Positions 141 to 41,739 of a stretch of DNA of 64,000 nt are shown one piece after another. A program made the translations under genes and the position numbers. Source of the stretch: Pelomyxa schiedti (taxonomy: Eukaryota; Protista; Evosea); contig JAHLWZ010000022.1 in assembly GCA_020536535.1 (NCBI GenBank), positions 88,947 to 152,946 on the forward strand, given 5' to 3'. The notes under the pieces are model-generated. The model did no database searches, had not been told where the DNA came from, and was given only the letters and a program-made list of their open reading frames with translations. Every line of letters begins with the position of its first letter. The stretch's first letter is position 1.

Positions 141-1917
141 CTATGAGCTCAGAAACACAACAGATTTGAGTTCTCGTTGATCTCGTACTGAAACTGCAGG
201 CAAACAAGTGCCAGCAACAATCGGGCCCTCCTGTAAGTTGTGAGCACATAGGCAGGGATGCAAACTACACACCTGCCAAAATGTCGACATAGTTGCCCTA
301 TTGAAAGGTACTTTTGGTGGATCCCAGACATGAACAATAGGTGTGTTTGACAAGTTAGCAAGCAAGATTATGTAGCACATTTCTTCATGCAGCTTGTGGA
401 GTGTGTCTGCCACGTCCTTGTGACCAGAGCAAATTTGAAGAAACTTACTGCCCTTGAGGTGATTTTTGGAGAGCTCCTTAATTTTAAACAGTTGCAGGTG
501 ATTCCTTCGCATGTACTCATAAATAAAGCTTTCAGCCAATTCGTCACGTGTTTCACTGGTTGCCAGGGGTGAGAACACTTCTTTTTTGAGACCGTCAATT
601 TGAAGGGTTATGAGTGTTTCAGTTGCTTTGAAAATTTGTAGGCAAAAACCGCTCTGCTTTGACGGAATATTACATTGAGTTAATGAGAGCTTGTCATAAA
701 CGAAATTGGCGAACATCTGTACTATAGTTGGGGCTATATGAAGTTCGAGATAAAGGTACATTGTCCCGAAACTCTTTGTATCTAGAAATGATTTCATGTA
801 GCAGAGGAAAACCATTGGTCAAGGAAGGTGCCTCGCCTATAACAGGACAGAGGGGAGTAGCCTCTGAGGGCCTAGATTCCAATTCGGCTACCTTACGTTG
901 TAGTTCCCAGATTTGCTGTATGGAGTGAGTAAAGATTTTCTTCTAGATGGGAGCAACCTTATTCTTTAACCGCTCTTCCTGTCTAAGTTGGGATATTGTC
1001 ACCTCAGACTCCACCTGGTTCTGATTGTTGCAACAGGCAGAAGCGGTATAGTTTTGTGAAGTGAGTGAGCGTTTGCTAATATTGTGGCATGCTTCCTCCA
1101 TCTGCCTACATATTTCCGACAAGTTCTGAATGTCCTGGGCGGTTTTCTCCAGCTCAACTTCTTTGGTGGAGCAATCGCCCTCCCTTGTTATGCACGCGTC
1201 CTCTCGCTTACGGCACTCCTCCTCCGCTCGTTGCAGCGCAGCGTCCCTTTCCTTGAATTCCTCTTCACTCCGTTGCAACACAGTGTCCCGTTCCCTGAAC
1301 GCATCTTCACTCCTTTGCAGCTGAGCTTCCCTTTTCCTAAACTCCTCCTCACTCCTCTGTAGCTCCGCCTCCCTTTTCCTGAGCTCGGCTTCCTCCAGTT
1401 GCAGCTGAGCCTCCTTTTGCCTGAGCTGCTCCGCAGTATGCGCCAGAGCAAGTCTTTCGCGGTCCCCCTCTTCCGTGCCGCAGCCACCGTGCCCGTGGTG
1501 CTGCTGGTGCTGGTGCTGGTGCTGCTGCTGCTGCTCCTCTTCGGAACTCCCCCTTCGGCTATGCGAGGCGTGCCTTGCATCGCCTGCCGAATGGCCCTCG
1601 CTATCAACCGGGTCCGCGCGTTTGATAACTACCACGACGCTTTTGGGGGCCGCGCGTGACGGCGACGTTGACGTGGCCGAGCTTCCCCCGCCGGTGACGT
1701 AGGTTGTGGTTGTGGTTGTGGTTGTACATGATGATGTACATGTAGGCGGCGAGGCTGGTTGTGGTGCCCCCGACCGGGCCGTTGTTGTTGCGCCTTTCCT
1801 GCGTATGAGTTCCTCCTGGGCCTTCTCTTTATCTCGGGAAGAAAGTTTCTTCCTAGCAAGTTTGCTGTCATTTTCACCTGTTGGCCCACTGTTGGTGCTT
1901 CGACTGCGCAGGTTCAT
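141..1917 (-). CDS. Coiled-coil protein with C-terminal GrpE/Mieap-like domain (paralog 1), spliced
   Basis: ORFs 943-1917, 694-882 and 141-815 join in frame via GT-AG introns (about 916-957, 717-759, 231-272). The spliced C-terminus reads HVWDPPKVPFNRATMSTFWQ|EGPIVAGTCLPAVSVRDQRELKSVVFLSS*. It shares TNGFPLLHEI..YKEFRD and ANFV(Y/W)DK with the neighbouring gene. The domain call is by eye. Confidence 0.7.
1160..1410 (-). repeat. Coding tandem 42-nt (14-aa, double-heptad) repeat
   Basis: Units: LQLEEAELRKREAE / LQRSEEEFRKREAQ / LQRSEDAFRERDTV / LQRSEEEFKERDAA / LQRAEEECRKREDA / CITREGDCSTKEVE. Confidence 0.85.
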
Positions 1918-1990
1918 CGTTTGTATTTTTGCACAGAGAATAATAAAATAACAAAGTTTTTCTTTTTTGTGTGTAGCCAGCTCAACTTGG

Positions 1991-3896
1991 CTACCATCTA
2001 GGTTTTACAAGAACAGTGGCTTTGAGCTCCCGGTGGTCGCCAGTGAAAACAGCTGGCAAAACGACCAGACTTGCAAGGTAGACCTTTGTGGGGTTGTTCA
2101 GGTCCTCTTCTTGCTGAAATAAAATTAGTCACACGTTCAAACAAGATGAAGTATCCGCATACTGTGTAGAATTTCTCCATTGTGGTTTTATCAAATTGAG
2201 TTCCAACTCCACTCCAAACATGCGTGATTTCGGTATTTGAAATGTGAACCAAAATCATCATATTCAGAGCTGACTCGATAATTCGAGACACATCACGGTA
2301 GTCTGTTTTGAGGCCGCCGTAATATTGCATATTCAGCACTCGCCCAACCTCACGAACCATGAGGGGGATGTCAAACAGGTTCTTGTAGTTTCGTCTATAA
2401 TACTCCATCAGAAAGTTCTGTGTATATGAGTCGAGTGCAGTAAGAAGAAATGCTCCGGCCACTCTTCTCTGGATATTCTGGATTTCTTTCACCACAAAGT
2501 CCTCACTGCTATGAAAAAGCTGGCAACAGAATTGCGCTTGCGCCTCTGGTGTCTGGTAACTGCGATACAATGGTAGCTTGTCCCATACAAAATTTGCCAA
2601 CTCCTTCGCGGAAGTCAAGGAAATATGAGAAGCAGAGACAAACTGTATCCCGAAATTCTTTGTAGGCTCTCAGAATCTCATGTAAAAGTGGAAAACCGTT
2701 GGTTATGGAGGCAGCAGCGCCTGGAACAAGCGGAACTGTTGTCTCTCTGAGACGCTTTTCAAGCTCAGAAACTTTTTGTTCCAAGTCCCAGTGAGCCTTT
2801 GAGTGTGAATTAAGAGGAAAAAAAAAAGGGGGTGGAAATTGACCTTATTTTTTTGGCGTACTTCATCCTCCAGTTTTGCTTTCTCGATTTCAAATGTTGT
2901 TATCTAATCGCGAATGAGGGGATTTCAGAGAAATGAAAAATAGACCTGCTGACGGGCAGTCCCCAGCTGTACTTTGAGTTCTTTTGTTCTAGAGAGTTCT
3001 TCCAAGAAGGAATTATGTTGACTCAATCTTCCAACTTGAAGCTGCATACTATCCACCAGTTGTTTCAAGAGTTGAGGCGGTGCAGGGGTTTGTTCTGCCT
3101 GTTTCAACTGAGCGTCTTTCTGTCGGAGGCTCTCCTCGGTTTTTTTAAGAACCAACTCCCTCGATGCGCACATACATTCTCTCTGCTTTAACATTTCTTC
3201 CCTTTCACTCATTGATGCTTCTTTTCTTGTAATAGTTTCTTCTCGATTACGAAGGTCGGCCTCCTTTTCCTTATTCTCATCCACTCCTGAACCCGGAGCT
3301 GCATCTTTTCTTACAAAATGCTCTTCTATCAAAGATGCATATATTTGATTTTGTTCTTCCAGTCTCCGTTCTTGATCTTGGAATGTAGATACCTCACCAT
3401 TCAGTTTGAGACAGAATGTCTCGAGCACGGAGCGTCTTTCATCCAGAGATTGGATTAAATCCTTCAGCAGTTTCTCCTGCAAGTCTAATTGTGACTGGCG
3501 GTCAATGCCCACTTGCTGTTGCGCTTTGAGAGTTTGTACTTGAGAGAGCAATTCGGTCTTCTCTTTTTCAAGGGACTGTATTTGTTGGTCTTTGAGGCGG
3601 AACTCTCCCTGATATGCTGCCCAACACCGCTCGTTTGCCTCCGCAGTTGCTCTGGAAAGTATTGCCTGCCTTTCGCTATTGTTCAGCTGTCTCACGTGCT
3701 CCAGCTGTCTTGTTTCTGCCTTAACTTGCTCCTGGAGCCTGGAAAGAGTGCTCATCCGTTCCTCTATTTGGAGGGCCAGGTTATTGCTCAAGACCGTTCT
3801 AGGGTCGATTTCCATCACAGTACTTACACTGCCTGTCGGTACTTGGTGTGCAACAACCGACGAGGAACCAGTAATGCCCGGCAATGACCCCGACAT
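1991..3896 (-). CDS. Coiled-coil protein with C-terminal GrpE/Mieap-like domain (paralog 2), spliced
   Basis: ORFs 2925-3896, 2509-2784 and 1998-2618 join by introns, including 2604-2643 and 2114-2162. The spliced C-terminus reads HVWSGVGTQFDKTTMEKFYT|QEEDLNNPTKVYLASLVVLPAVFTGDHRELKATVLVKPRW*, with TAG at 1991-1993. Intron positions match paralog 1. Confidence 0.7.
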
Positions 3897-4065
3897 ACCC
3901 TTTTTTTTTGTTTATTTGGTCTTTGGTGTCAACCCAACGGCACCTAAGTTAAGAACCAACTAGCTCATGTCCAACTTGGCTTTCAAAATTCCTGGCAGTA
4001 CTTTGGTGGGTAGGTGGGACAACCAAAAAGCAGTAAAAAAAACAAAAACACCCGATAAAACCAAA
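3897..4065. promoter_or_regulatory. Putative bidirectional promoter between GrpE-like gene 2 and the Hsp70-vWA gene
   Basis: Divergent ATGs at 3896 (-) and 4066 (+) are 169 bp apart, and each is preceded by an A-rich leader. Confidence 0.5.
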
Positions 4066-6798
4066 ATGGCGGCCTCCACCCCCGCAAGTTCGACAACACC
4101 CACCAGCAGCTCCTGGAGTAAATACGCAGTCATATGCGCTGTTGACTTCGGAACAGCGCGAACTGGGTTTGCGTGGCTGTACACCCAGAATCCAGGGGAG
4201 GTGTATGACAACCCGCCATGGCCTCAGACTCCAGGGGGTTACCCAAAGACTTCCACCGAGATCATACTTACCAAAGACACGCACGAGGTTGTTGCGTTTG
4301 GATTCGCTGCTCGTAACCAGATGGCATCGATGAACGACGCCGCGGCGGCGAAGGTTTTGCNNNNNNNNNNNNNNNNNNNNNNNNNNNNNNNNNNNNNNNN
4401 NNNNNNNNNNNNNNNNNNNNNNNNNNNNNNNNNNNNNNNNNNNNNNNNNNNNNNNNNNNNTACCCAAAGACTTCCACCGAGATCATACTTACCAAAGACA
4501 CGCACGAGGTTGTTGCGTTTGGATTCGCTGCTCGTAACCAGATGGCATCGATGAACGACGCCGCGGCGGCGAAGGTTTTGCACTTCTCCAAGTTTAAGAT
4601 GTTTCTGGACCCAAATTCGGCCAGAGCTGTGCAGGTAAAAGCATCAAACTGTGATGAAACTTTGCCACTGGTCGAAGTCATTTCAAAGGTGCTGGAGACT
4701 GTCAAAAAGGAGGCATTGAAGGTATTTGCGTCGCAAGGAAGAACCCTTGTAGCAAATTCAATTTTGTGGGTTCTCACTGTTCCTGCAATCTGGGATTCCG
4801 CTGCTAAGACCATTATGACGGAGGCTGCTCAAAGGGCTGGCTACGGGACAGATAACGTAATGCTAGCACTGGAACCAGAGGCTGCTTCACTCTATTGCAT
4901 GTTTAAGTCAACGCTGCCTACGCAGTTTCATAGACCAGGAACGAGGTATATCATAATTGATGCCGGCGGCGGTACTGTAGATATTACAGTTCATGAGATT
5001 CAATCGGATTTATCAGTTCATGAACTATTGCCGGCTTCTGGTGGTGCTTGGGGTTCAACATATGTAGATGACGGCATGTTGAGGCTAATTGAAGAGATTT
5101 TTGGGCAGACTGCAATTGCTGCAGCACGTAAGTTTCCTGATTGGGTAGAAGTTCTGGAGAAGATAGAGTCAAATAAAATGAGTTGTACGCCAGAATCAGT
5201 TGCTGAAGGCGCTCTCAGGAACTTGGATTTTGCTCTAGTGACAGAAGTTTTGAAGGGTACCACAATTAAAGACTGCATCGCCAGGTTTAATACTTCAAAA
5301 CCTGGCATGAATCTCACCTGTCGTGGATCTTCTACTGTCCGGATTTCCTCCAAAATAATCAGTGACATTATTACTCCGTTGGCCAAAAAAGCAGCCGACC
5401 ATGTTGCCACACTCCTCGAATCTGTGGATGTTTCACTTATTCTCCTTGTTGGTGGATTCAGTGAAAGCCCAATTTATCAAAAGATTTTCAGGGATCGATT
5501 CGCAACTGACACGAGGCTCGTTATTATTCCACAGAGGCCAGGCTTTGCCGTACTTTTTGGAGCTGTCCTATTTGGACTCAATCCAGGAGTAATATCCAGC
5601 AGATCATCAATGTATACATATGGAATAGATATGATGGAACTGTGGAACTCAGACAAACATGGCTCGCGCCCGAAAATTGTAGCGGACGGGAAGAACTACT
5701 GTGGGAATGTGTTTGATATATTCATCATGGCCGGGCAACCTGTTGACCTGGTAAGTCAGGTCAGACGAGTATATACTCCAGTAAGTCCAGACCAGGCGGA
5801 AGTAGAACTTTGTGTCTATAGAAGCAAAAATAAGAGTCCCAAATTCACAAACGAGGAGGGAGTGAAATATGTTGGAGTTCTTTCGTTACCTCTTTCTGAT
5901 ATTGGAAGACCAATTGCTGACAGGCAAGTTGAGGTCTTAATGAAGTTTGGAGGAACCAATATAACTGTTTCGGCAATACACAAAAATAGTGGGGAACTAG
6001 TCAATGCACAGTACCGGGAATACTTGAGTGAGTATTTATTTTCTACATCAAGGAAATTAAATATGGTGACATATACCAGATGACGCTGAACTACCCCAAA
6101 AACCAGTAGCAACTAGTCCCTATTCCATTGATCTATGTTTTGCAATGGTGTGTATTCTGTGTCTTGAAAGTACCCTTTCTCACCTACCAAAGGATTGCAC
6201 CGGTTCTATGTCAAGCTGGATAACTCGAACGAAGGAGGAAGTTGTGTCTATTGCAGGGCAAATACGGTCGCGATTTGCCAAGTCCAGTCTGCGAATTGCC
6301 TTTATTGGCTACCGCGATCACTGCGACACTCCCATTCATGCTATACACCCCTTCAACGAGGATGCCGGCAGCATGAAAATATTTCTAGAAGCAGTGAAAG
6401 CCACGGGGGGCGGAGACACCCCAGAAGACGTACTCGGAGCACTGATGGCTTGCTCTCAGCAGAAATGGACTTCTTCAGCCCGAGTGCTGGTCCACATTGG
6501 AGACGCCCCGTGCCACGGCACAATGTACCACTCGTGCGGCGACGACTCGTACCCGGACGGAGACCCCAATGGCCTGACCCATGACTTTGTGCTGCGTAAG
6601 CTGGCCGCGTTGAAGATAGACTACTACTTCATGAAGTTGAACAACAGCACCGACCAGATGGCGAACATTTACAGCAACACGTACAAGGCAGTGTCTGGGA
6701 GGCCCATACACATGATCGACATCGGGTCCAACGTAGCAGCACTTCTGCCAACCGTCGTGGAGTGTGTTGTAAAGTCCATCACCAAACTGAGCCAGTAA
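4066..6798 (+). CDS. HSPA12-like Hsp70 fused to a C-terminal vWA domain (vwkA-like MIDAS)
   Basis: Hsp70/HSPA12 motifs: VDFGTARTGFAW, WVLTVPAIWD, ALEPEAAS, IIDAGGGTVDIT, GGAWGSTYVD, LVGGFSESP. The reading frame is continuous once the duplicated gap flanks are collapsed. Introns 6028-6079 and 6148-6192 give ...REYLNDAELPQKPVATSPYSIDLCFAMDCTGSMSSWI...GGGDTPEDV...HIGDAPCHG. Confidence 0.88.
4361..4460. other. Assembly gap (100 N) flanked by an identical 121-bp overlap (false gap)
   Basis: 4240-4360 is repeated at 4461-4581, and merging the two keeps the Hsp70 frame. Confidence 0.93.
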
Positions 6799-7233: not shown

Positions 7234-10200
7234 TTATGGTTGTTGAGCCATCGACGTTGTGGTTGTGGTTGTGGTTGTGGTTTGAGTTGGGGATCTGCAA
7301 ATTGCCTCAGTCAGAGTGAGTCTAGAATGACTTGGTGGTGCTAAAGCTAATCTGTTAGGCTCCTGGTTATCAGGGCTTGTGGGGGCTTCCATAATGTTGG
7401 GCATCAATGAAACATTTTGTGGTGGCACACTGGCAATCATTTTGAGAGTTTCTGCCAGTTGGGGTATCTCTGTGTGGCGGTGCTGTCCAACATTGCCTGC
7501 CAGTTCCATCATTTTCTCCTCTGCCCCCCAGGCACCAATACTGATGCAGTAAATTGGTACCTTTCCTTGAAACTCTTTGAAGATTGCACAGAGCTCTTTT
7601 TTCCCCGTCTTGTCACCTCCATCAGAGACAACAATGAGCTGTGCGGAAAATTCGTCCCTTTTTGGAGACTGTTAAGACGGAAGCTTGAGAGGGAAAATTA
7701 ATACCAATTTGTACTTCGTAGTACTTCTTGGCACTTGAGCAATGCAGGAGAAAACGCTGTTGAACTCCCAAAAGGGCCGGAAACCTTTGATTCAAATTCG
7801 AGTGCTTCCTCACGTGTACACGGTGGTATTACATGATCCACTCCTCCAGAGAAGAAGACGAAACTGTACAAATCATTTGGATTGTCTCTTCGCTGGATAT
7901 AAGTCTTCACACTGATCACAAGTGCTTCCCACGCGTTACTATAGCCGGTTCCCCAAGAGTACAAAGCACTCTTCATAGAGGAGGACCTGTCAAGACAAAA
8001 AACTACGTGCAGGTCTTGTGGGGTCCCGTGCAAGTGGCTGAACAGGTGCCCATCTTCCGAAGCATAACCCACTTGTTCCAGAAAAGTGGTCTTTCTGCCT
8101 TTGTTGAGAGGACACGGGGGATGCCACAGCGGAAGTAAACACATGACTCTGTCTCTATGGGAATTGCAACAGGCGTGAGGGCACTGTTTGAACGATGGAA
8201 TCTGCTCTGGTGCGCACGGATCCACAAAGTTGATGAAGTTCCAGTATTTTTCGTGGGTGAGTTCATCCTTTGGAGAGTCTGGATCTGGGTTGTACTGCAC
8301 AACGGCGTGTCGTAGGCCTTCTTCTCCCCTTGAGCAGGTGGTTTTGGACTTGCATGGGAGTACGTGGATATGCCCTCTTCCACCTTCAACACAGAATGAA
8401 TCGCACATTTTTGCCCATCCCACTTCTCCCGCGCGGTATACTTGCCCGTGTAGCTCAATATCGTTTTCTGTTGAAACAAAGTGTGCATGTATCATTTTGC
8501 CATGACGGCCGGTATCGTGTTGTCCCTTGTGCCCAAACTTAAGCTGACAGTTGTAGCCACAGGCTGGGCACACCTCAAGGCAGAAATGATGAGTGGAGTG
8601 CTCACTGTGTCTATGACTGTCACCGTGTGTCAATTTTCCTTCAGGTATCATTGCACAACAAGGTAGTTTTCTTTGCTCCGGTACAGTGATTGTATCGTAC
8701 TCGATGTTCGGCTCCTTCACCGAAACACGGAATGTAACTGGTCTTCGAATGTACTTTACCTCGCAACAGCCATCTTGGTTGCAGATCTCTGGACATCTGT
8801 GAGCGTTGGCACATAAGTGGGTATTTGCGGTGGAGTCTTCATTTCCATGAAAGTGGTGGGAGGCGCATGTATTCCGACAGTTTTGGGAGAAGAAACAAGC
8901 ATGCAAGCACTTATTCATCCCGCAGTCGTGTTGTTTGTGGCTGTCACAGGAAAGTTTGCAGCGTCGTGCGCAAGGTTGCCCTCCAGGACCAATTGCCGAA
9001 CAGGGATCTCCACACGTGTGACTTCGAGCACTGCACTTGCAGCCACCGTCGTGGTTAAGTGGGAGACTGCAGAATTTGTTGCAACCATCTCTGTCTAAGA
9101 GTTGGCAGGTTTTATTGCAGGTATGACCCTGCCGGCAGTCGTGCGCTCCACTATGGGCAGACGTGTAGAAACATTGGGTTTTTTTCCCAAGCTGATTGCA
9201 GTTAACACAGTGGTCTTCGCAGTGGTGAGACCCACAGCAGTCGTGCTCGCCCGAATGTTGACGTAGAAGCAAGCAAAGCAATCCACAGTTATCACAAGTA
9301 TTCGTGCAAAGTGCTAGTGCATCCAGTTGTTGCATGGCACGTGCGACTTCGGTCTGGAATGCAATAACATTTTGGTCTTCTCTCCATTCCGCCTTTATGT
9401 TGGAACTGATCCACAGTTTTACATGGTTCTTGCGGCTTTCTATAACAAGCTCCACAAACTTCTTGAATTGATCACGTCCGCTTTGGACTGATTGTTTGAT
9501 TTTTGGAAAGTACTTTTCAAATTGAGCCTTTAACTCGTTTCGTATTCGAAGTAAATCTTGTTCGTCTGTTGTGTCCAGATTAAAATGCGAGATGGGAATT
9601 CTTAAGCCAGAAAGCTCGACTTCGTCACAAGAAATGACCTCTCTGGTCAGGAAATTGGTGAGCTGTCCAACAGGACTGGTGACTTTGGTTCTCCCATAAG
9701 ATATGGCTGAAGGAAGCCCTTTTTGAAGCTTTTTAATAGCAATTTTCACATCCTGACCGACAAGAGAAGACCAGTCCTTCAAATTCAGCTTGGCTAATAA
9801 CAACTTCATCTCATCTACGAACTCGGCGCCCAGGAACTGCGATCTTTGTTCCTGAAGGAGTGTCTTGCACCTTTCCAAGCTTTCATTATATCCAGGGGTA
9901 CCGAAGTGGTGACACAGTATAAACTCAAACTGTCCGGAAAACATGCATGTAAGAAAATTATTTCCCTGGTTCTGCGAGATGAGCTCACGGAATTTGGACT
10001 CAAACTCCGCCCCTAAGCTGCTTATGTCCCTTTCCTCAACATCTCTTGCCATCAGAGCAAAGAACCCTCTGAAGAGTTTTTCATCACCGTGCACTAGTCC
10101 AATGCCCCGCTGAAACTTTTGGAACATCTGCTCAGTTTCCCGGTCAACATTCAATGCAGTCCGGAAAAGAGTCAAGTTTGAGACAGCGGCATTTAAAACT

Positions 10201-13200
10201 GAAAGGAGAAGGTCTTCTTCCATGGAACGCTCCAAGGAGCACAGACCCTCAAAATCCAAGGCAACAATTAACCGATCAGACTTTTCACGCACACTCATCC
10301 AGCAGCCGTTTGTGCACCTTCCTCCCGAAATATCGAAGAGAACACCCAAGAGGTGGTTGAGAACATAACTTTTCCCAGTGCTTTGCTTGCCCATGGATGT
10401 GACAACAAACACTGGCTTTCTTGTGCAGGATGCAAAAACTGACTCGAGCAGTCCAAATGAAATTTCATCAGCGACATCATTCTGGTCTTTGTTCCCAATT
10501 GTGCGTGGCTTCTGGACAACACCATTATCTATAATCTCCAAGCAGTTATTGTCGACTCGAGCAATCTGGATTGGAACTTGAGATATAAGAGTCTTGAGCC
10601 ACCTTCCACAACCAGTCGGCTCCATACAGTCCGAGTCCGACTCGTTCCATCCCTCCTCAATGCCACAAGTGACGTGATTCGAAAAGAATTCATCGGCCCT
10701 CTCCCTACCAACCTTGAATAGGCCAGAGAGCAAGGTCTGTCGTTTTGCAAGGCACTTTGATACCAGGGTGCTTATCTCAGGTGTCAGTGTTGGTACCACT
10801 ACCATCAGCTTGCACGGTTTGCAATGCTCATTTGTGTCACAAACTGCTGTGATTGGAAATTTGTCAAACATCAAGTAAAGGTAATCCAGGATAGGACGAG
10901 AAAGTTGTTGATTTGAAACTATCTTGGAGCTCTGCATTCTGAAATCGGTGCGTTTCACCTGAGCTTCCAACACCACTGAAGAAATGCGGTTCTCACTGGC
11001 ATGATATTGAACTAAATGTTTCTCCAACTTGCCGGCAGTACAAAAATCCACAAGGATCGTGGAGCCAAGAAGCTGTGGATTGAGCAAGTTGGTGTCACAG
11101 TGGAGTTCAGTGCTATTGCTCGTGAAACTCCTGACAGAAATTCGAGCACTCTCACATGATCCAGAAACCTCCATTTGTGAAAGCGTCACAAAACAGTCTC
11201 GATCAATAATTAAAGGCCTTCCATTGACTTTCAAGTCACAAATTTTGTTATGCTCGAAGTCATAGAGCTTAGTTGTCGTTGGAAATAGCAGCATCACCTT
11301 GTGTCCTCCTGGAAGAGGGATAACTTCAGTCAACTTGGAGAAGGTTGGGTCAAAAGAGAAAGAACCCAAAGTTTGGTAATTATTGTATGAGTCAGTGAAC
11401 ATCAGGGCATGAACACTGGCAATTGGTGGAGGATATGCCACAGCAAACACCCTGGTGGATTCACAGAAATTAAAAATACAACCAGATGCCCGCCTCTTCA
11501 GTGTAAAAAAGGAGTCATGGTGCCCCTCCTGACGAATAGAAATGGCCAAATTTGGATCGCCCTTGGATCTCTCTGTTCCCACAAGCATGATGTTATTTGA
11601 AGGCAATAAAAACCCACTCAGAACAGTTGCCAGACGAGATGAAAAACGCCGGGGTTCCGCGAAAGATTCCCTGCAAGATTCAGCTGTCCTCTCTGCCCCC
11701 ATTTCTATCACCGTGATTTCTAGGTGCGCAGCTTCCTCTTGTTCGAAGAGAACACCAAGCTCAACTTTCCGGCCACTGTGGTCCAGGCTTAAGTTTGTGA
11801 TGCGGGATTGTTTGGTGTTGGTGGATGGAAGTTCCTTTGCAATTGCTTTATCAAGTTGAGAAGAAACCTCTTTTGACCAAGCTGCATAATAGTGAGAAGG
11901 GTTGCTCAACACATCAACCTTGATCTTTTTGACAAGGGCTTCAATTCGTTGCTGCAGGCTATTGGGTGCCAGGGTATCTGTTGCCTCCAGTGTTCCAGCT
12001 GACGAAATGTGGGATCCTGTCATAGACCTTAACCATCTTCCTGGTTGCATCCAAGATGATTCTGACTTTCCAAGAGAGTTGTTTTCCAACAGGGAGGAAA
12101 GGTCTTTATCGTAGGTGTCCAAGCAAGTGGGGACAAGATCGTCACTGAACTCTTTTGGTAAAGAATGGAACATTGGCGACTGCAACAATTCCTTGGGCAA
12201 GTCACAGCTAAGTTTCATCCTCATGTGTAGCACGACTTGTACCGCAATCCCGTCAAGTCGTCTTTTTTTCCAACCTTCAAACTCACGCACGAGACTGTGG
12301 TTACAAAGATCCAGCAGTTGAAACTTTTGTTCCCAGGTGAGACTCTCTGTGTTACACTCACTGCCCTGAAGGAGGGCCAACAGCTGCTGTTTGAAGGAAG
12401 AAAGATCGAAGTTGCCAGTGACAGGCACAAGCTCCGATTTTGAAGGGACTTCCTGCCAACTTACAAACCCCACTGTGTGACTGCCCTTGCACATCATCCA
12501 GGGGGTTTTATTTGGAAGAGGGAGAGAGCAAGTAAAACCCTTCTGGACCTCGCATCGCTCTTGGATACTGTTCTCTTGAACCACACAGTGTATTAGCCTT
12601 GATTCCTGGGATATTGGGCTCTGCTGGTGAAGTTCTTCAATCATTCTCCCGGACAAGACAAAGAAAATCCTGTCGCACAGGGTGTAAAAAAAGCGCAGTA
12701 AGAGGCATGCAGGGTCAGAAATCTGAACGAGGGAGAAGCTTTCTGCTGCTGGAATAAAAACGAGGATCATCACCCCTATGCCCTGCATGTGGGAGCTTGG
12801 CGCAAAACTAGTGATAAACGCGTGAATCCCGGGTTGCTCCACGGGGAGTTTTGTGATGGAAGAAAAAGCACCCGTTCGCATCAAGAACTGCGTCACCGTT
12901 GGCGGATCCCCAAAGAACCCGAGTGTGATACTGCACTTGGATCTATCCAGCTTGTCGAAGTCGATAAACTCACCATCTGTTATGCAAGCCTCCCCCAGAA
13001 TTCGGTTGGCAAGAGAGAGCACATTTTGTCCCAGAAGCTGAACCTTGTGCACAGACCCCTCTACCATGGTAACCAGGTGGTGGGGTTCATGGCTCACTTG
13101 TTCCAACATGCATGGAAAGGCACTGGCCGCAGGCAAAGGGGAAGGTGAAGGCGAAGGGTTGGAAGAGACAGAAAGTGGTGGAGGGGCTTGGAATAATTCT

Positions 13201-13860
13201 TTCTTCACGTTCTCCAACACGTTGACAGCTGTTTTTTTTGGCATCTTCACGGACTGTATCAGCCTTTCAACATTAAAAGGAAGGAGGTCTTCCAAGTCCT
13301 GGAATCCTGCGTTGACCAGCGCAGGAGGGAAATCTTTCAACTTAGAATAAGGGGTACCCCCTGGGTCACTTATTGGCACTGCTCGCCTTTGCAATTTGAG
13401 TGTCCACCCAAGTTTGCAGCCTGAGTCCTGGAAAATTGCCGGAGGAGCCTCCCTCAACCCAGCCAATGTGCACGGCTTGTCACACATCCTCAATGCTTTG
13501 CACACAGACTCTTCAGCATCACACAATCCAATATCTTTTGCAAGTGAGAAACACGAAAAAAGAGGGGGAGAGGAAAAAAAAGGCAACATTCTTTCAAATG
13601 ACCAAAAACATCACAAAATACAAGACTCGTCTATAGGCGCACAGGAAAGCACAACCTTTCAACTTGAGGTGAAGATCGGTGACAGACAAGGCCTGACGCA
13701 CCGACAAGTAGAGCGACGCGTCAACGTCGTCCTTGTTCTCGTCCAGCTGCCGCAGGAACTCAGTAGGTGGTGTTCCGTCCATATCGAAATTAAGGGCATC
13801 GAGCGCACTCACGTCAATCCCCGCGCCGACCAGTGTCTCCCTGACGCTGTGCCCTGACAT
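7234..13860 (-). CDS. Giant GB1/RHD3(VLIG)-type GTPase with N-terminal HhH/SAM-like segment, Cys/His-rich zinc-finger array and C-terminal vWA (copy A)
   Basis: G1 GKQSTGKS, G2 RCT, G3 DFEG; many HxCxxxC units; vWA with VVFCLDRSSSM and, after an intron near 7660-7704, LIVVSDGG. Exon 1 (MSGHSVRE, 13860) joins via intron 13535-13655. The same structure occurs in copy B. Confidence 0.88.
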
Positions 13861-35308: not shown

Positions 35309-38300
35309 ATGTCGGGGCACAGCGTCAGGGATATCCTGGTAGGCGCGGGGATCGACGTAAGTGCGCTCGATGCCCTTAATTTCGATATGGACGAAACTCC
35401 AGTGGCAGCGTTCCTGCAACAGCTGGACGAGAACAAGGACTACGTTGACGCGTCGCTGTATTCCTCGGTGTGTTCCACCTTGTCGCGCTTCGCCGCTTCT
35501 GTCAACGATCTTCACCTCAAGTTGCAAGGTTGTTGGGTTTTCCTGGTACCTTGGACTCACTTGCAAAAGAAATTGGATTGGGTGAAGCTGAAGAGTCTGT
35601 GTGCAAAGCCTTGAGGATGGGTGAAAAGCCGTGCACATTGGTTGGATTGAGGGAGGCTCCTTTGGCAATTTTCCAGGACTCAGGCTGTAAACTTGGGTGG
35701 AGTCTCAAATTGCAAAGGCGAGCAGTGCCAAGCAGTGACCCAGGGGGTACCCCTTGTTCTAAGTTGAAGGGTTTTCCCCCTGTGCTGTTCAAGGCGGGAT
35801 TCCAGGACTTGGAAGACCTCCTTCCTTTTAATGCTGAAACCTTGATACAATCAGTGAAGATGCCAAAAAAAACAGCTGTGAATGTGTTAGAGAATGCAAA
35901 GAACATATTATTGCCATCCCCTGCATCATCAACCGCCTTTCCATGCATGTTGGAACAAGTGAGCAATGAACCCCACCACCTGATGACACTGGTACAGTTG
36001 GAGGAGTCAGTGCACAAAGTTCAGCTTCTGGGACAAAATGTGCTCTCTCTTGCCAACAAAATTCTGGGAGAGCCTTGTACAGCAGATGGTGAGTTTATCG
36101 ACTTCGACAAGCTGGATAGATCCAGGTGTATTATACTCGGATTCTTTGGGGATCTGCAAACTGTGACGCAGTTCTTGATGCGAACAGGTGCCTTTTCTCC
36201 TGTCACGGAACTCCCTGTCAAACAAACCGGGATTCACGCGTTTATCACTCGTTTTGCACCAAACTCCCGTATGCAGGGCATAGGGGTGATGATCCTCGTT
36301 TTTATTCCAGCAGCAGAAAGCTTTTCCAATGTTCAAATTTCTGACCCTGCATGCTACTTCCTGCGATTTTATTACAGCCTGTGCGACAGGATTTTCTTTG
36401 TCTTGTCCGGGAGAATGATTGAAGAACTCCAACAGCAGAGCCCCATCTCCCAGGAATCAAGGCTAATACAATGTGAGATTCAAGAGAACAGTATCCAAGA
36501 GCGATGCGAGATACAGAAGGGTTTTACTTGCTCTCTCCCCCCTCCAAATAAAGCCCCCTGGATGATGTGCAAGGGCAGTCACACAGTGGGGTTTGTAAAT
36601 TGGGAGGAAGTCTCCTCAAAAACAGAGTTTGTGCCTGCCACTGGCAACATTGATCTTTCTTCCTTCAAACAGCAACTGTTGTCCATCCTTAATGGCCGTG
36701 ATTTGTACACCGATAACCTCACTTTTGAGCAAAAGTTTCAGCTGCTTAATTTTTGTAACCACTTTGCCATGTGTGAGTTTGAAGGTTGGAAACAAAGACG
36801 ACTTAATTGGATAATGGGGCAGGTGGAGATACGAATGAGGACGCACCTTGGCTCCTACTTGCCCAAGGAATGGTTGCAGCCGCCAATGTCCAAAAATGCT
36901 TTACCGCGAGAGATCAGTGAGGATATCGTACCCACCTGCTTGGATAAATACGCTCATGAGGTTGCAGCCCTATTGGAACAAAACTCTCTTGGGAAGTCAG
37001 TGTCGGCAACAAGTCGAGAATCGGGCTGGTTTCACCGTATAAGGAGTGTTTCAGGATCCCAAACATCCCTAACACCTTCCGAAACACTGGAGGCAACAGG
37101 TACCCTGGCACCCCAGAACCTGCAGCGACGAATTGAAGTCCTTATCAAAAAAATCAAAGATGATGTGTCGAGCAACCCTTCTGACTATTATGCAGCTTGG
37201 TCAAAAGAGGTTTCTTCTCAAATTGAGAAAGCAATTGCAAAGGAATTTCCATCCAGCAACGCCAAAAAAGCCCGCATCACAAAGTTAAGCCCGGACCACA
37301 GCGGCCGGAATGTTGATCTTGGTGTTCTCGTTGAAAAAGAGGAAGCTGCGCACCTAGAAATCACAGTGATAGAAATGGGGGCAGAGAGGATCACCGACTT
37401 TTCCTGCGCATCTTTCACTCAACCTCGGCGTTTTTCTTCTCGTCTGGCAACTGTCCTGGGTGGGTTTTTATTGCCTTCAAATAACATCATGCTTGTGGGA
37501 ACAGAGAGATCCCAGGACGATCCAAATTTGGCCATTTCTATTCCTCATGAAGGGCGTTTCGAGTCCTTCTGGACTCTGAAGAGGAGGGCATCTGGTTGTG
37601 TTTTTAATTTCTGTGGATCCACAAGGGTGTTTATTGTGGCCTATCCTCCACCAATTGCCAGTGTGCACGCCCTGATGTTCAATGACTCCTACACAAGTTA
37701 TCAAATATTGGGGTCTTCCTCTTTTTTGGGAGACCCAATGTTCTCCAAGTTGTCTGGAGTTATCCCTGTTCCAGGAGGACGCAAAGTGATGCTGCTATTT
37801 CCAAGTGCAACTAAGCTTCACGACTTAGAAAATCACGATAGTTGCGACTTGAAAGTCAATGGAAGGCCTTTGCTTATTGATCACGACTGTTTTGTAACGC
37901 TTGCACAAATGGAGGTTTCTGGACCATGTGGAGCAGGTGAGAACACTCGGATTTCTGTGAGGAGTTTCACGAGCAGTAGCTCTGAACTCCACTGTGATAC
38001 CACCTTGCTCAATCCACAGCTTTTTGGCTCAACGATCCTCGTGGATTTTTGTATGGGTGGCAAATTGGTGAGACATATAATCCAATATAATGCCAGTGAG
38101 AACCGCATTTCTGCAGTCATGTGTGATGCCCAGGTGAAACGCACAGAGTTCACAATGCACAGCTCAAAAATGGTTTCAAGTCCGCAACTTTCTCGTCCTA
38201 TCCTGGATTACCTTTACTTGATGTTTGACAAATTTCCAATCACAGCAGTTTGTGACACAAATGAGCACTGCAAACCGTGCAAGCTGATGGTAGTGGTACC

Positions 38301-41300
38301 AACACTGACACCTGAGATAAACACCCTGGTATCAAAGAGCCTTCAGAAACTACAGACTTTGCTCTCTCGCCTATTCAAGAGTGGCTGGGAAAGGGCAGCT
38401 GAATTCTTTTCGAATCACATCACTTGTGGCATTGAGGAGGGATGGAATGAGTCGGACTGTTTGGAGCCGAGTGGTTGTGGATGGTGGCTCAAGACTCTTA
38501 TATCCCAAGTTCCAATCCAGATTGCTCGAGTCGACAACAACTGCTTGGAGATTATGGATAATGGTGTTGTCCAGAAGCAACGCACAATTGGAAACAAAGA
38601 CCAGCATGATGTCGCTCTCGAAATTTCCTTTGGACTGCTCGAGTCAATTTTTGCATCATCCGCAAGAAAGCCAGTGTTTGTTGTCACATCCATGGGCAAG
38701 CAAAGCACTGGGAAAAGTTATGTTCTCAACCACCTCTTGGGTGTTCTCTTCGATATTTCGGGAGGAAGGTGCACAAACGGCTGCTGGATGAGTGTGCGTG
38801 AAAAGTCTGATCGGTTAATTGTTGCCTTGGATTTTGAGGGTCTGTGCTCCTTGGAGAGGTCCACGGAAGAGGACCTTCTCCTCTCAGTTTTAAATGCCGC
38901 TGTCTCAAACTTGACTCTTTTCCGGACTGAATTGAATATTGACCGGGAAACAGAACATATGTTCCAAAAGTTTCAGCAGGGGATCGGCCTAGTGAAAGGA
39001 GATGAGAAACTCTTCAAAGGGTTCTTTGCTCTGATGGCCAAAGATGTTCAAGAAAGGGACATAAGCAGCTTAGTTTCGGAGTTTGCATCCAAATTCCGTG
39101 GAATAATCGCACAGAACCAGGGGAATAATTTTCTGACACGCATGTTTTCTGGACAGTTTGACTTTATACTGTGTCACCAACTCGGTACATACGAGTATAA
39201 TGAAAGCTTGGAAATGTGCAATGCACTCCTTGCGAAACGAACTTCGCAGTTCCTGGGCGCCGAGTTCGTAGATGAGATTAAATTATTATTAGCCAAACTT
39301 AATTTGAAGGACTGGTCTTCACTTGTCGGGCAGGACTTGAAAATTACTCTTAAAAAGCTACAAAATGGGCTACCTTCAGCTATGTCTTATGGGAGAACCA
39401 AATTTACAAGTCCTGCTGGGCAGCTTCCAAATTTCCTGACCAGAGATGTTATTTCTTGTGTGGAAACCGGAGTGGTTTCTGAAATAAGAATTCCTATCTC
39501 ACATTTTAATCTTAACACAACGGAAGAGACAGATTTACTTCGGATACGAGACGAGTTAAAGGCTCAATTTGAAAAGTACTTTCCAAAAACCAAACAGTCA
39601 GATCCATTCCTTTGGCATGAGCAATTCAAGCAGTTTGTTGCTCTTGTTATAGAAATCCGCAAGAACCATGTGAACATGTGGATCAGTTCCAACATAAAGG
39701 AAGAATGGACAAAAGACCCAAATGTTATTGCATTCCAGACCGAAGTGTCACGTGACATGCAACAACTGGATGCACTGGCACTTTGCACGGATACTTGTGA
39801 TAACTGTGGATTGCCTTGCTTGCTTCTAGCTCCACATTCGGGCAACCACGACTGCTGTGGGTCTCACCACTGCGAAGACCACTGTGTTAACTGCAATGAG
39901 CTTGGGGAAAAAACCCAATGTGTCTACACAGCTGCCCATAGTGGGGCCCACGACTGCGGGCAGGGTCATACATGCAATAAAACCTGCCAACTCTACTACA
40001 AAGATGGTTGCAACAAATTCTGCAGTCTCCCCCTTAACCACGAGGGTCACTGCAAGTGCAGTGCCAAGAGTCACACGTGTGGTGAGCCTTGCTCGGCAGT
40101 GGGTCCGGAAGGGCAACCTTGCACACAACGCTGCAAACTTGACTATATGAACCACGAACTACACAATTGTGGGATGGATAAGTGCTTGCACACTTGTTTC
40201 TTCCCCAATTGTGGCAAGACATGTGCCTCTCACCACTTTCATGGAAATGAAAACTCCACTAAAGAGACCCACTTATGTGCCGACGCTCACAGATGTCCAG
40301 AGATCTGCAACCAAGATGGCTGTTGCGAGGTCGAGTACGTTCAAAAGCCAGTTCTGTTCCGTATTAAGGCAAACATCGAGTACGATACAATCACTGTACC
40401 GGAGCAAAGGAAACTACCTTGTTGTGCAATGATACCTGCAGGGAAATTGACACACGGTGACAGTCATAGACACAGTGAGCACTCCCCTCATCTCTGCCTT
40501 GAGTTGTGCCCAGCCTGTGGCTACAACTGCACTCTACCGTTTGGGCACCCGGGGAGACACAATACCGACCATGGCCAAATGGTACATGCACACTTTGTTT
40601 CAACAGAAAACGGCATTGAGCGACACGGGCAAGTATACTGCGCTGGAGAAACGGGATGGGCAGAAATGTGCCGTACGTTTTGTGTTGAAGGTGGAAGGGG
40701 GCATATCCACGTACTCCCATGCAAGTCCAACACCATCTGCTCAAGGGGAGAAGAAGGCCTACGACACGCCGTTGTGCAGTACAACCCAGATCCAGGCTCT
40801 CCAAAGGATGAACTCACCCACGAAAAGTACTGGGATTTCATCAACTTTGTGGATCCGTGCACACCAGAGCAGATTCAGGCGTCCAAACGGTGCCCTCACA
40901 CATGTTGCAATTACCATGGAGACAAGTGTTTACTTCCGCTGTGGCATCCCCCGTGCCCTCTCAACCAAGGCAGAAAGACTATTTTCATGGACCAAGTGGG
41001 TTATGCTTTGCAAGATGGGCACCTGTTCAGCCATCTGCACGGACCTCCACAAGACTTGCATGTGGTTTTTTGTCTTGATAGGTCCACTTCGATGCAAAAT
41101 TCTTGGTACTCTGTTGCGATTGCGGGGTATCAAAACGCTTGGCAGGCACTTGTGGACAGTGTGAAGGGTTATATTCGGCTACGAGACAATCCAAATGATT
41201 TGTACAGCTTTGTCTTCTTCTCTGGACAAGTGGATTGTGTACTAGCACCGTGTACACGTGAGGAAGCACTCGAATTTGAATCAAAGTTTTCTGACCCCTT

Positions 41301-41739
41301 TGGTGAGGAAACATCGTTTTCCCCTGCATTGACCCGGTGTCACAAAGTGCTACAAACTACAAATTGGTTTTTGTTTTCCTTCTCATGCTTCCTTCTTAAC
41401 AGTCAATAAAGGGAAGAATTTTCGGCACAGCTTATTGTAATCTCTGATGGAGGTGACAGCACAGGGCAGGAAGAGCTCTGTGCAATAGCCAACGAATTCA
41501 AAGGCTCACTGCAAATCTACTGCATCAGTATTGGTGGCCTCCTGGCAACCAGGAAAATGAAAGCCCTGGCAGGCACTGTTGGAGAGCACCACAACGCAGA
41601 AATTCCACAACTGGTGGAAACTCTAGCCACAATAGCCAGCATCCCACCACCAAATGTTGCTTTAATGCCCAACTTTATGCCAACCCCCACAAACCCCACT
41701 GCCACACAAAGGACAAATAGCACCCAGAGGCATTTTTAA
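35309..41739 (+). CDS. Giant GB1/RHD3(VLIG)-type GTPase-Cys/His array-vWA (copy B, inverted paralog of 7234-13860)
   Basis: Exon 1 MSGHSVRD, intron 35529-35569, a ~5.8-kb exon with the same G motifs, an intron near 41368-41411, then EFSAQLIVISDGG... to TAA at 41739. Confidence 0.88.

Follow-up and report, generated by a model that had tools for sequence, protein, structure and literature searches.

The window analysed here, a 64,000-nucleotide stretch of the Pelomyxa schiedti genome (contig JAHLWZ010000022.1), opens with two spliced genes on the minus strand, which we designate A and B, followed by a divergently transcribed Hsp70 gene. The products of genes A and B share a C-terminal domain (C-domain). 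The features are listed below, with the evidence for them in brackets.

141..230, minus strand: last exon of gene A, 29 aa plus stop, beta-hairpin end (...LPAV...RELKSVVFL) (cDNA)
273..716, minus strand: exon 3 of gene A, 148 aa, helical core of the C-domain, beginning with the family motif NFVxDxL
760..915, minus strand: exon 2 of gene A, 52 aa, in which the coiled coil ends and the conserved helix motif GFPLLHEIISRYKEFRD follows (cDNA joints 915->958 and 716->760)
958..1917, minus strand: exon 1 of gene A, 320 aa (open reading frame with donor site; cDNA joint 915->958; composition)
1991..2113, minus strand: last exon of gene B, 40 aa plus stop, beta-hairpin end (joint 2113->2163 in a B′-like cDNA; same join in P0001)
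2163..2603, minus strand: exon 4 of gene B, 147 aa, helical core of the C-domain (77% identity to copy B′)
2644..2796, minus strand: exon 3 of gene B, 51 aa, with the GFPLLHEILRAYKEFRD helix (cDNA joint 2795->2843; loose ends 2603 and 2643)
2844..2903, minus strand: exon 2 of gene B, a mini-exon of 20 aa that is not separate in gene A (cDNA; same join in P0001)
2946..3896, minus strand: exon 1 of gene B, 317 aa, coiled-coil region (cDNA joint 2903->2946; composition)
3897..4065, no strand: short intergenic region from which gene B and the Hsp70-vWA gene diverge (mRNA 5′ end at 3921; ATG at 4066)
4066..6798, plus strand: Hsp70 of the HSPA12 type with a fused vWA domain, P0003, 804 aa (Pfam HSP70 and VWA_4; P0003 100% identical)

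Read directly on the minus strand, gene A consists of exons 1917-958, 915-760, 716-273 and 230-144 with the stop codon at 143-141 (product of 549 aa), and gene B of exons 3896-2946, 2903-2844, 2796-2644, 2603-2163 and 2113-1994 with the stop codon at 1993-1991 (575 aa). All introns of both genes are of the GT..AG type and 40-49 nt long. The cDNA contigs from runs X3 and X4 skip 231-272, 717-759, 916-957, 2114-2162, 2797-2843 and 2904-2945, so that the in-frame 42-nt intron 231-272 of gene A is among those spliced out, and the gene B intron 2604-2643 is seen in cDNA contigs as matching loose ends. The contig spanning the last intron of gene B carries 8 mismatches, and this joint therefore probably comes from the sister copy B′, which is the public protein P0001 (contig C1856) and has the same exon joins as gene B. 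The SMART template-switch oligo was present as loose ends on the X3/X4 cDNA contigs; the mRNA 5′ ends marked by this oligo, at 3921 and 1935, indicate that genes A and B give two separate mRNAs. The original prediction had the spliced genes end in two particular C-terminal strings, and exons 3 and 4 of gene A and exons 4 and 5 of gene B encode exactly these. Rather than deleting the C-termini through some other splicing, the cDNA joints skip exactly the predicted introns. These data confirm that genes A and B are real, expressed, spliced as read, and tandem paralogues.

The predicted layout of both products was likewise supported: a coiled coil, then a helical region, then a small beta part at the C-terminus. 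Exon 1 of gene A encodes a disordered N-terminus with a Thr-run and a Gln/His-run, and then about five E/R/K-rich repeats of 14 residues, which look like a coiled coil or a single helix. Pro/Gly-free, charge-rich, heptad-like stretches precede the C-domain at approximately residues 155-280 of A and 40-345 of B. The C-domain of A is opened by the GFPLLHEIISRYKEFRD helix motif, which aligns with B, B′ and the environmental protein P0002. The C-domains of A and B are 30% identical (E 3e-16), and a phase-0 intron at the position of the last intron of gene A is also found in at least seven other genes of the family.

This family comprises about 14 Pelomyxa paralogues, with 18-30% identity among its members. 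Its C-terminal alpha+beta domain spans approximately 150-210 residues and carries an extra helical insert of about 40 residues in A, B and P0002, and its N-terminal modules vary among paralogues, from the disordered region and coiled coil of A and B to a protein kinase (Pfam) in one paralogue. An exhaustive profile search of 1.84 billion protein representatives returned two proteins only, and P0002 is the sole environmental relative of the family among them. Likewise, a word search with the family profile had P0002 as its sole match, and one with a 191-aa piece of gene A gave no matches. Single exons were used in the database searches, with P0001 as the full-length stand-in for gene B; Pfam scans of each exon separately and of P0001 and P0002 gave nothing but weak coiled-coil noise. 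For Pelomyxa gene C, the best weak Pfam match was DUF7491.

On the long contigs (C22, C804 and C500; three loci), each of the 12 family members has an HSPA12-like Hsp70 gene at a distance of no more than 4 kb. In the window, the neighbour is P0003, whose record name is HSPA12A, Pelomyxa schiedti; it is transcribed divergently from gene B at a distance of about 170 bp, and the region 3897..4065 is likely the shared promoter of the two genes. A divergent arrangement of B′ and an Hsp70 gene is repeated at the edge of contig C1856. An assembly gap (4361-4460) lies inside the Hsp70-vWA gene, and its flanks are duplicated. Another neighbour gene in the window encodes a URGCP/GBP-like GTPase of 1963 aa, which combines a zinc-finger array with a vWA domain. 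The HSPA12 alignment shows no variation at the catalytic Hsp70 residues, and thus a nucleotide cycle exists to be regulated. Among animals, amphioxus has a canonical MIEAP gene directly upstream of three HSPA12 genes; at the HSPA12 loci of oyster and clam and at a second amphioxus locus (Branchiostoma belcheri), a MIEAP neighbour was not found within 10 kb.

The proteins had been taken for GrpE-like co-chaperones in the original prediction, and sequence comparison does not support membership of the GrpE family. The Pfam GrpE model (PF01025) had no match at E<=10 in any exon, in P0001 or P0002, or in 15 aligned family members, but in a six-frame scan of the genome it detected the true GrpE exons on contigs C570 and C1976 (34.9 bits), with none on C22. 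The His, Ala, Gly, Arg and Val of the GrpE signatures FDPxxHEA and RVLRPAxVxV are invariant in 24 bacterial GrpE sequences; in the family alignment, His is replaced by Met, and neither the Arg-Pro-Ala nor the Ala is kept. The GrpE-like remnants that recur in the family are Gly-Thr/x-Val and a terminal V.V pattern, and the motifs F/Y-D/N-x-x-x-M/H, GTV and terminal K/R..V.V follow one another in the same order as in GrpE. Profile-profile comparison (hhalign) of the 22-row family alignment with a 24-sequence GrpE profile gave a single colinear alignment over 69 columns (score 23.9, P 0.0048, probability 7.3%), in which family columns 120-189 of 193 pair with GrpE columns 93-162 of 163. The last ~70 residues of the family can thus be placed over the beta-domain of GrpE, though the match is weak (P 0.005, probability 7%). 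The signal rose with the diversity of the family profile (P 0.092, then 0.013, then 0.0048), and most null models stayed below the real score, with maxima of 15.8 for shuffled GrpE columns (240 trials) and 19.4 for 8-column block shuffles (120 trials), and scores of 11-12 for reversed profiles. When the family columns were shuffled, however, 5 of 100 trials attained the real score, a heavy tail that is probably due to fragment rows. Compared with the GrpE exon of the amoeba itself, the family profile had a probability of 0.2%, and the canonical MIEAP exon of amphioxus, compared with the GrpE profile, had P 0.25.

The resemblance to Mieap/SPATA18, also noted from the C-termini, holds for language-model features and hhalign: the shared C-domain looks distantly like the animal MIEAP domain. 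By language-model features (atlas), 25 of the 30 named clusters nearest to P0002 residues 228-426 are MIEAP (score 0.94; 196 of 256 features shared), and P0001 scored 0.90 against the MIEAP cluster with 169 shared features. The alignment of the family with the last MIEAP exon of amphioxus (hhalign) gave P 0.0016 and 0.0033 with probabilities of 10-16%, and none of 200 shuffles reached the real score. On the other hand, the Pfam MIEAP model (PF16026), which matches the amphioxus exon at 6e-14, matched no family member at E<=10 and had no genome match at E<=1, and the N-terminal MIEAP motif/exon does not align with the family (P 0.36). When open reading frames from four animal HSPA12 loci were searched with the family HMM, no significant match emerged; the MIEAP exon ranked third (E 1.2). 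The MIEAP gene next to HSPA12 in amphioxus has a coiled-coil first exon with a faint DUF7491 match. In the papers searched, MIEAP/SPATA18 and HSPA12 occur together only as co-listings in omics tables, with no described link. To our knowledge, the molecular mode of Mieap/SPATA18 action is unsettled.

Structure prediction for the domain by itself yielded no dependable fold for the beta part. Two AlphaFold2 runs on shallow alignments gave pLDDT values of 49.6 and 63.3, with the last 60 residues below 45. Fold searches with the second of these models (atlas, PDB Foldseek, VIA-align wide) found only generic helical bundles or unnamed fungal proteins; GrpE, BAG and MIEAP were not among the fold matches listed, in a comparison that barely reached the beta part. 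A PDB sequence search with the family profile gave nothing below E 0.6. The BAG family was also absent from the Pfam matches of family members.

The complex of the C-domain with the neighbouring Hsp70 passed the prediction test. With P0003:1-600 and P0001:380-591 as input, that is, with the domain of copy B′ rather than of the B gene of the window, ipSAE values of 0.77, 0.79 and 0.77 were obtained vs. 0.01 for the best of three controls, the partner of the Hsp70 had a pLDDT of 83, and at least 88% of the contacts were common to the runs. Of 78 solved complexes, 51 reach the pass mark of this test, as do 2 of 108 mismatched pairs (39 of 65 solved and 2 of 126 unrelated pairs for eukaryotes), and 7 of 44 blindly drawn pairs of neighbouring genes pass it too. 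The score is the model's own confidence and could stem from its memory of solved complexes of Hsp70 with exchange factors. On the partner side, the predicted interface includes Asn28 (conserved in 13 of 14 rows) and Asp32 (15 of 15), and the tightest contacts are made by the N-terminal helix of the domain, not by the beta part. On the Hsp70 side, the footprint maps to DnaK residues 25-34, 265-272 and 277-299, with the Tyr285 position among them; all three belong to the contact regions reported for GrpE (PMC10825016). GrpE itself engages the Hsp70 nucleotide-binding domain at loop 28-33 and lobe IIB and accelerates ADP release. The C-domain is predicted to grip the nucleotide cleft of the neighbouring gene's product, the HSPA12-type Hsp70. 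The suggestion that these proteins serve the adjacent Hsp70 is strengthened by the recurrent gene linkage and, in silico, by a complex predicted at the exchange-factor site.

Taken together, the data favour, with a probability of roughly 55%, the view that A and B belong to an adaptor family expanded in Pelomyxa, whose MIEAP-related C-domain docks on the nucleotide-binding domain (NBD) of HSPA12-type Hsp70s and opens or holds the nucleotide cleft. Each protein would combine a variable N-terminal module with a C-terminal alpha+beta domain that is a putative remote relative of the MIEAP/SPATA18 domain, and this domain is predicted to dock on HSPA12-type Hsp70s such as the neighbouring Hsp70-vWA. 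In the model, the first long helix of the domain, bearing the invariant Asn and Asp of NFVxD, would rest on the helix and beta-hairpin of lobe IIB, and the footprint would also cover the lobe-I loop equivalent to DnaK residues 25-34, the site where GrpE binds DnaK. Exchange factors generally work by shifting lobe IIB. Most likely, we infer, the domain would open or hold the cleft as an exchange factor or as a clamp of the nucleotide state, and the ATPase would thereby be coupled to whatever the N-terminal module scaffolds.

The same predicted contact may serve another purpose. It is possible, though distinctly less probable, that the domain binds the Hsp70 NBD as a recruiter or lock in a signalling or defence-like assembly formed by Hsp70-vWA, the kinase paralogues and the giant GTPase-vWA, with the ATPase state as the gate for assembly or for the release of effectors. 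Consistent with this, the Hsp70 carries a fused vWA domain, a type of protein-interaction module, a kinase is present on one paralogue, and the 1963-aa GTPase-vWA is encoded next door; the family is also large and divergent, as recognition and adaptor families tend to be. Against it, the dN/dS of 0.3-0.6 between B and B′ means that there is no overall positive selection, and the GTPase was observed at the window locus only, the one of the three clusters that was scanned for it. As to the action of the domain as such, the present evidence fits a lock and an exchange factor equally.

A wider reading, which we consider rather doubtful, takes the MIEAP-type domain for a module of ancient origin, shared by Amoebozoa and chordates at least, which binds the HSPA12-type NBD, acts like an exchange factor and might ultimately relate to the GrpE head. 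If so, HSPA12 chaperones would own a dedicated co-chaperone family, and animal Mieap/SPATA18 would act via HSPA12A/B.

It is unlikely that the proteins are MIEAP-like scaffolds independent of Hsp70, working in condensates or in organelle/lipid quality control as does animal Mieap, with the adjacency as a by-product of duplication. The order of disordered region, coiled coil and C-terminal domain is indeed MIEAP-like, most animal HSPA12 loci checked lack a MIEAP neighbour, and all three clusters resemble repeated cassettes, so the linkage at three loci could partly mirror block duplication of an ancestral cassette. However, the loci are old, since family members share only 18-30% and the Hsp70s of these loci 35-46% identity, and yet every member on a long contig keeps its Hsp70 neighbour; moreover, amphioxus shows the same MIEAP/HSPA12 pairing, and the complex prediction passes (controls 0.01) with invariant family residues in the predicted interface. 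Least probable of all is that A and B are true, highly diverged GrpE homologues acting as cytosolic exchange factors, their last helix and beta part being derived from the GrpE four-helix bundle and beta-domain: the footprint on GrpE contact regions and the colinear alignment agree with such descent, but the near-invariant residues are lost, the Pfam GrpE model misses every family member, and the tightest predicted contacts lie in the N-terminal helix.

Hsp70s of the HSPA12 type occur widely and have undergone massive expansion in bivalves, and their function and cofactors are unknown according to a 2026 review (PMC13580251). If the predicted docking is true, the C-domain would be the first candidate helper for these poorly understood chaperones, and to GrpE, BAG, HspBP1 and Hsp110 it would add a fifth class of Hsp70 exchange factors or NBD adaptors. 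The linkage in the amoeba, the predicted exchange-factor site and the MIEAP/HSPA12 adjacency in amphioxus provide a concrete and cheap hypothesis for the HSPA12 and Mieap problems alike.

The proposed system resembles known ones to different extents. As in BAG co-chaperones, a conserved, mostly helical C-terminal module is predicted to sit on Hsp70 lobes I and IIB and is combined with variable N-terminal modules; unlike BAG, the domain has an additional beta part and its partner is an HSPA12-type rather than a canonical Hsp70. The resemblance is functional only. Like GrpE, the exchange factor of DnaK and mitochondrial Hsp70, the family proteins show a long coiled coil that leads into helices and then into a small beta part at the C-terminus; the predicted footprint takes in the loop equivalent to DnaK 25-34 and, in lobe IIB, the helix and the hairpin, and so overlaps that of GrpE. 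In contrast to GrpE, they have a far more extensive helical region, make their main predicted contact through the N-terminal helix of the domain and lack the signature residues, and the genome encodes a separate, genuine GrpE. The comparison with MIEAP/SPATA18 differs in the extra helical insert of A, B and P0002 and in the N-terminal MIEAP motif, which does not align. At the same time, in both the N-terminal half is disordered or coiled-coil and the protein ends in a domain of about 200 aa, and the two resemble each other in the C-terminal hairpin motif, G-x-[IV]-D-F-Y-[IV]-x-P-x-[LF] ... K-x-x-V. Just as the family genes of Pelomyxa do, the canonical MIEAP gene of amphioxus adjoins HSPA12 genes.

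The window belongs to contig C22 of Pelomyxa schiedti. Its stretch 141-3896, with the strand read directly, holds two genes on the minus strand, A and B, which are tandem paralogues with a coiled coil and a shared C-terminal domain (C-domain):

Exons 1917-958, 915-760, 716-273 and 230-144, minus strand: gene A, 549 aa by direct reading
Exons 3896-2946, 2903-2844, 2796-2644, 2603-2163 and 2113-1994, minus strand: gene B, 575 aa by direct reading

Their introns are 40-49 nt each and GT..AG without exception, and the C-termini quoted in the original prediction are exactly the product of the last two exons of A and B. Two of the four public runs containing this DNA (X3 and X4) are cDNA, with contig ends that are the reverse complement of the SMART template-switch oligo. 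The contig joints exactly skip six of the seven A/B introns, and the seventh is seen as matching loose ends. The joint across the last intron of B comes from a contig with 8 mismatches, which therefore probably stems from the sister copy B' on contig C1856; P0001, the public protein encoded by B', has joins identical to those of B throughout. Since the cDNA joints skip the predicted introns and the P0001 joins agree with them, the splicing proposed earlier holds, and both genes, their introns and their C-termini are real. The oligo marks mRNA 5′ ends at 3921 (B) and 1935 (A), on separate mRNAs. A third such end in X3, at 1762 inside exon 1 of A, may reflect internal initiation, mRNA degradation or noise from strand switching.

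The same arrangement recurs at C1856:287-2918, where a complete B' is followed by the start of A' and the contig breaks off at the start codon of the Hsp70. Both B and B' (dS 0.12-0.30, dN/dS 0.29-0.61) are under constraint; they are either copies from an old duplication or strongly diverged haplotypes. One B'-like cDNA contig reaches a depth of 287 in X3 vs. about 10-25 over most of the remaining stretch.

The N-terminus of A comprises about 150 disordered residues with runs of Thr and of Gln/His, followed by 14-residue E/R/K-rich repeats free of Pro and Gly. In exon 1 (958-1500) five tandem repeats of the type EAxLQRSEEEFRKR follow these runs, of which the Gln/His one is encoded by (CAG/CAC)n; read coverage is broken at the 1487-1546 repeat. 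In B, residues ~40-345 form charge-rich, heptad-like segments. It is the C-terminal 200-230 residues that A and B have in common (30% identity, E 3e-16). Profile searches revealed about 14 paralogues in the genome (contigs C22, C1856, C804, C500, C2211 and C2112), and an exhaustive search of 1.84 billion representative proteins matched only P0001 and P0002, an environmental transcript product. The family is characterized by an N-terminal helix of the C-domain with NFVxDxL, whose Asn and Asp hardly vary, a helical core that differs in length between members, an intron in phase 0 right before the last exon in most members inspected, and the C-terminal end G-x-V...V-I/L-P-x-F/L...K-x-x-V-x-L. The beta part was poor in both of two AlphaFold2 predictions. 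One paralogue (C2211:1-1830, minus strand) begins with a protein kinase domain (Pfam Pkinase, 2.5e-9), which a long low-complexity linker connects to the C-domain; contig C500 carries a C-domain nearly identical to this one and preceded by the same low-complexity region. The replacement of the coiled coil by a kinase suggests that the C-domain is what stays constant and serves for docking.

By language-model features, the 30 named clusters closest to the P0002 domain included 25 of MIEAP (Mieap/SPATA18, PF16026; score 0.94, 196/256 features shared), while the likeness of the P0001 domain to the MIEAP cluster was weaker (0.90, 169 shared). The family was also aligned by hhalign with the last exon of the canonical amphioxus MIEAP gene, itself matching PF16026 at 6e-14, with P values of 0.0016 and 0.0033; none of 200 residue shuffles reached the real score. 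The Pfam MIEAP model, by contrast, does not detect the Pelomyxa proteins. We therefore call the C-domain MIEAP-like, a designation that is probably correct, rather than a proven member.

The original prediction took A and B for GrpE-like co-chaperones serving the adjacent Hsp70. Membership in GrpE was not established: the Pfam GrpE model gave no match at E<=10 in the A/B exons, searched singly, in P0001 as stand-in for B, in P0002 or in 15 pieces of the family. When the whole genome was scanned in six frames with this model, C22 yielded nothing, but the genuine GrpE, with a C-terminal exon ending in ...LLRPALVTI, was detected on C570 and C1976. This GrpE is presumably of the organellar type; its near-identical exons at C570:1474-1653 and C1976:1050-1647 suggest two haplotypes or copies in the assembly. 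When the family was compared by hhalign with a GrpE profile built from 24 bacterial genomes, the single alignment returned was the one originally imagined, with the last helix and beta part laid onto the last helix and beta-domain of GrpE, both running to the C-terminus. P improved with the growing diversity of the family profile (0.092, 0.013, 0.0048), and the score of 23.9 exceeded those of reversed profiles (11-12), 240 GrpE column shuffles (maximum 15.8) and 120 shuffles of 8-column blocks (maximum 19.4). However, the HH probability was 7%, 5 of 100 trials of one dirtier null reached this score, the family does not conserve the signature residues of GrpE, and the canonical MIEAP exon showed no relation to GrpE (P 0.25). 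Descent of the family from GrpE is thus unlikely.

The gene adjoining B, divergent from it across a shared region of ~170 bp, encodes an Hsp70 fused to a vWA domain. Its protein, P0003, is 100% identical to the NCBI entry "heat shock 70 kDa protein 12A [Pelomyxa schiedti]", and the closest named relatives are bivalve HSPA12A/B-like proteins (33-37% identity). An assembly gap (4361-4460) lies in the first coding part of this gene, and the ~100 nt preceding it recur behind it, as if overlapping contig ends had been joined with Ns; the duplication read in the window is therefore false, and the continuous protein is given by P0003. The next gene is a 1963-aa ORF (7698-13589, minus strand) that combines a GTPase domain of the URGCP/GBP-like type with a long zinc-finger-like array rich in Cys/His and, at its C-terminus, the start of a vWA domain; another ORF of about this size is present at 35470-41409.

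HSPA12-like genes are found on C22, C804 (five), C500 (five), C941 and C2809. All 12 family members on long contigs lie within 4 kb of such a gene, at three loci among whose members identity is only 18-46%. The ~23 kb cluster at C804:28000-53000 contains five HSPA12-like genes, two of them vWA-fused, with six C-domain-ending genes interleaved. The third, at C500:1-24000, has four family members alongside five pieces of HSPA12-like genes, several genes being broken by assembly gaps. Among four animal HSPA12 loci examined, one (Branchiostoma lanceolatum) has three HSPA12 genes with a 632-aa coiled-coil and MIEAP gene immediately upstream, and those of oyster, clam and B. belcheri have no MIEAP neighbour within 10 kb:

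OV696689.1:23281176-23303565, positions 1349-4980: canonical coiled-coil and MIEAP (PF16026) gene, same strand as three tandem HSPA12-type Hsp70 genes

One complex was predicted, between the Hsp70 part of P0003 (1-600) and the C-domain of B' (P0001 380-591), standing in for B. It passed with ipSAE of 0.77, 0.79 and 0.77 (best of three controls 0.01), a partner pLDDT of 83 and at least 88% of contacts common to the runs; the pass mark was reached by 51/78 solved complexes and 2/108 mismatched pairs, and among eukaryotes by 39/65 solved and 2/126 unrelated pairs. The score is the model's own confidence rather than a measurement and may reflect memory of known complexes, and the prediction leaves the pairing of individual paralogues with individual Hsp70s unspecified. 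The C-domain would contribute one face of its first long helix, on which the invariant Asn and Asp lie, and loops of the beta part. With P0003 aligned to DnaK sequences from grpE-dnaK loci, the predicted footprint on this Hsp70 falls at DnaK 25-34, 265-272 and 277-299, the Tyr285 position among them, the mapping being approximate in the divergent IIB region. GrpE contacts DnaK at 28-33, 51-61, 255-272 and the hairpin 276-302, and Y285R weakens its binding (PMC10825016, a 2023 JBC study). The predicted site thus coincides with that contacted by GrpE and lies on the lobe moved by exchange factors. The HSPA12 alignment shows no variation at the catalytic Hsp70 residues.

Taken together, the linkage and the passing complex prediction lend real support to service to the adjacent Hsp70, the part of the original interpretation that survives without the GrpE identity. 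With a probability of roughly 0.55, A and B would act as MIEAP-like adaptors docking on the exchange-factor site of HSPA12-type Hsp70s; nucleotide-exchange activity of the C-domain itself is a more doubtful proposition. Our literature search found no paper describing such a partnership, and the function of HSPA12 is unknown according to a 2026 review (PMC13580251). Among known systems, the C-domain has its nearest named likeness by features in MIEAP, whose Pfam model misses the Pelomyxa proteins, and its predicted footprint on Hsp70 overlaps the regions of DnaK contacted by the exchange factor GrpE.
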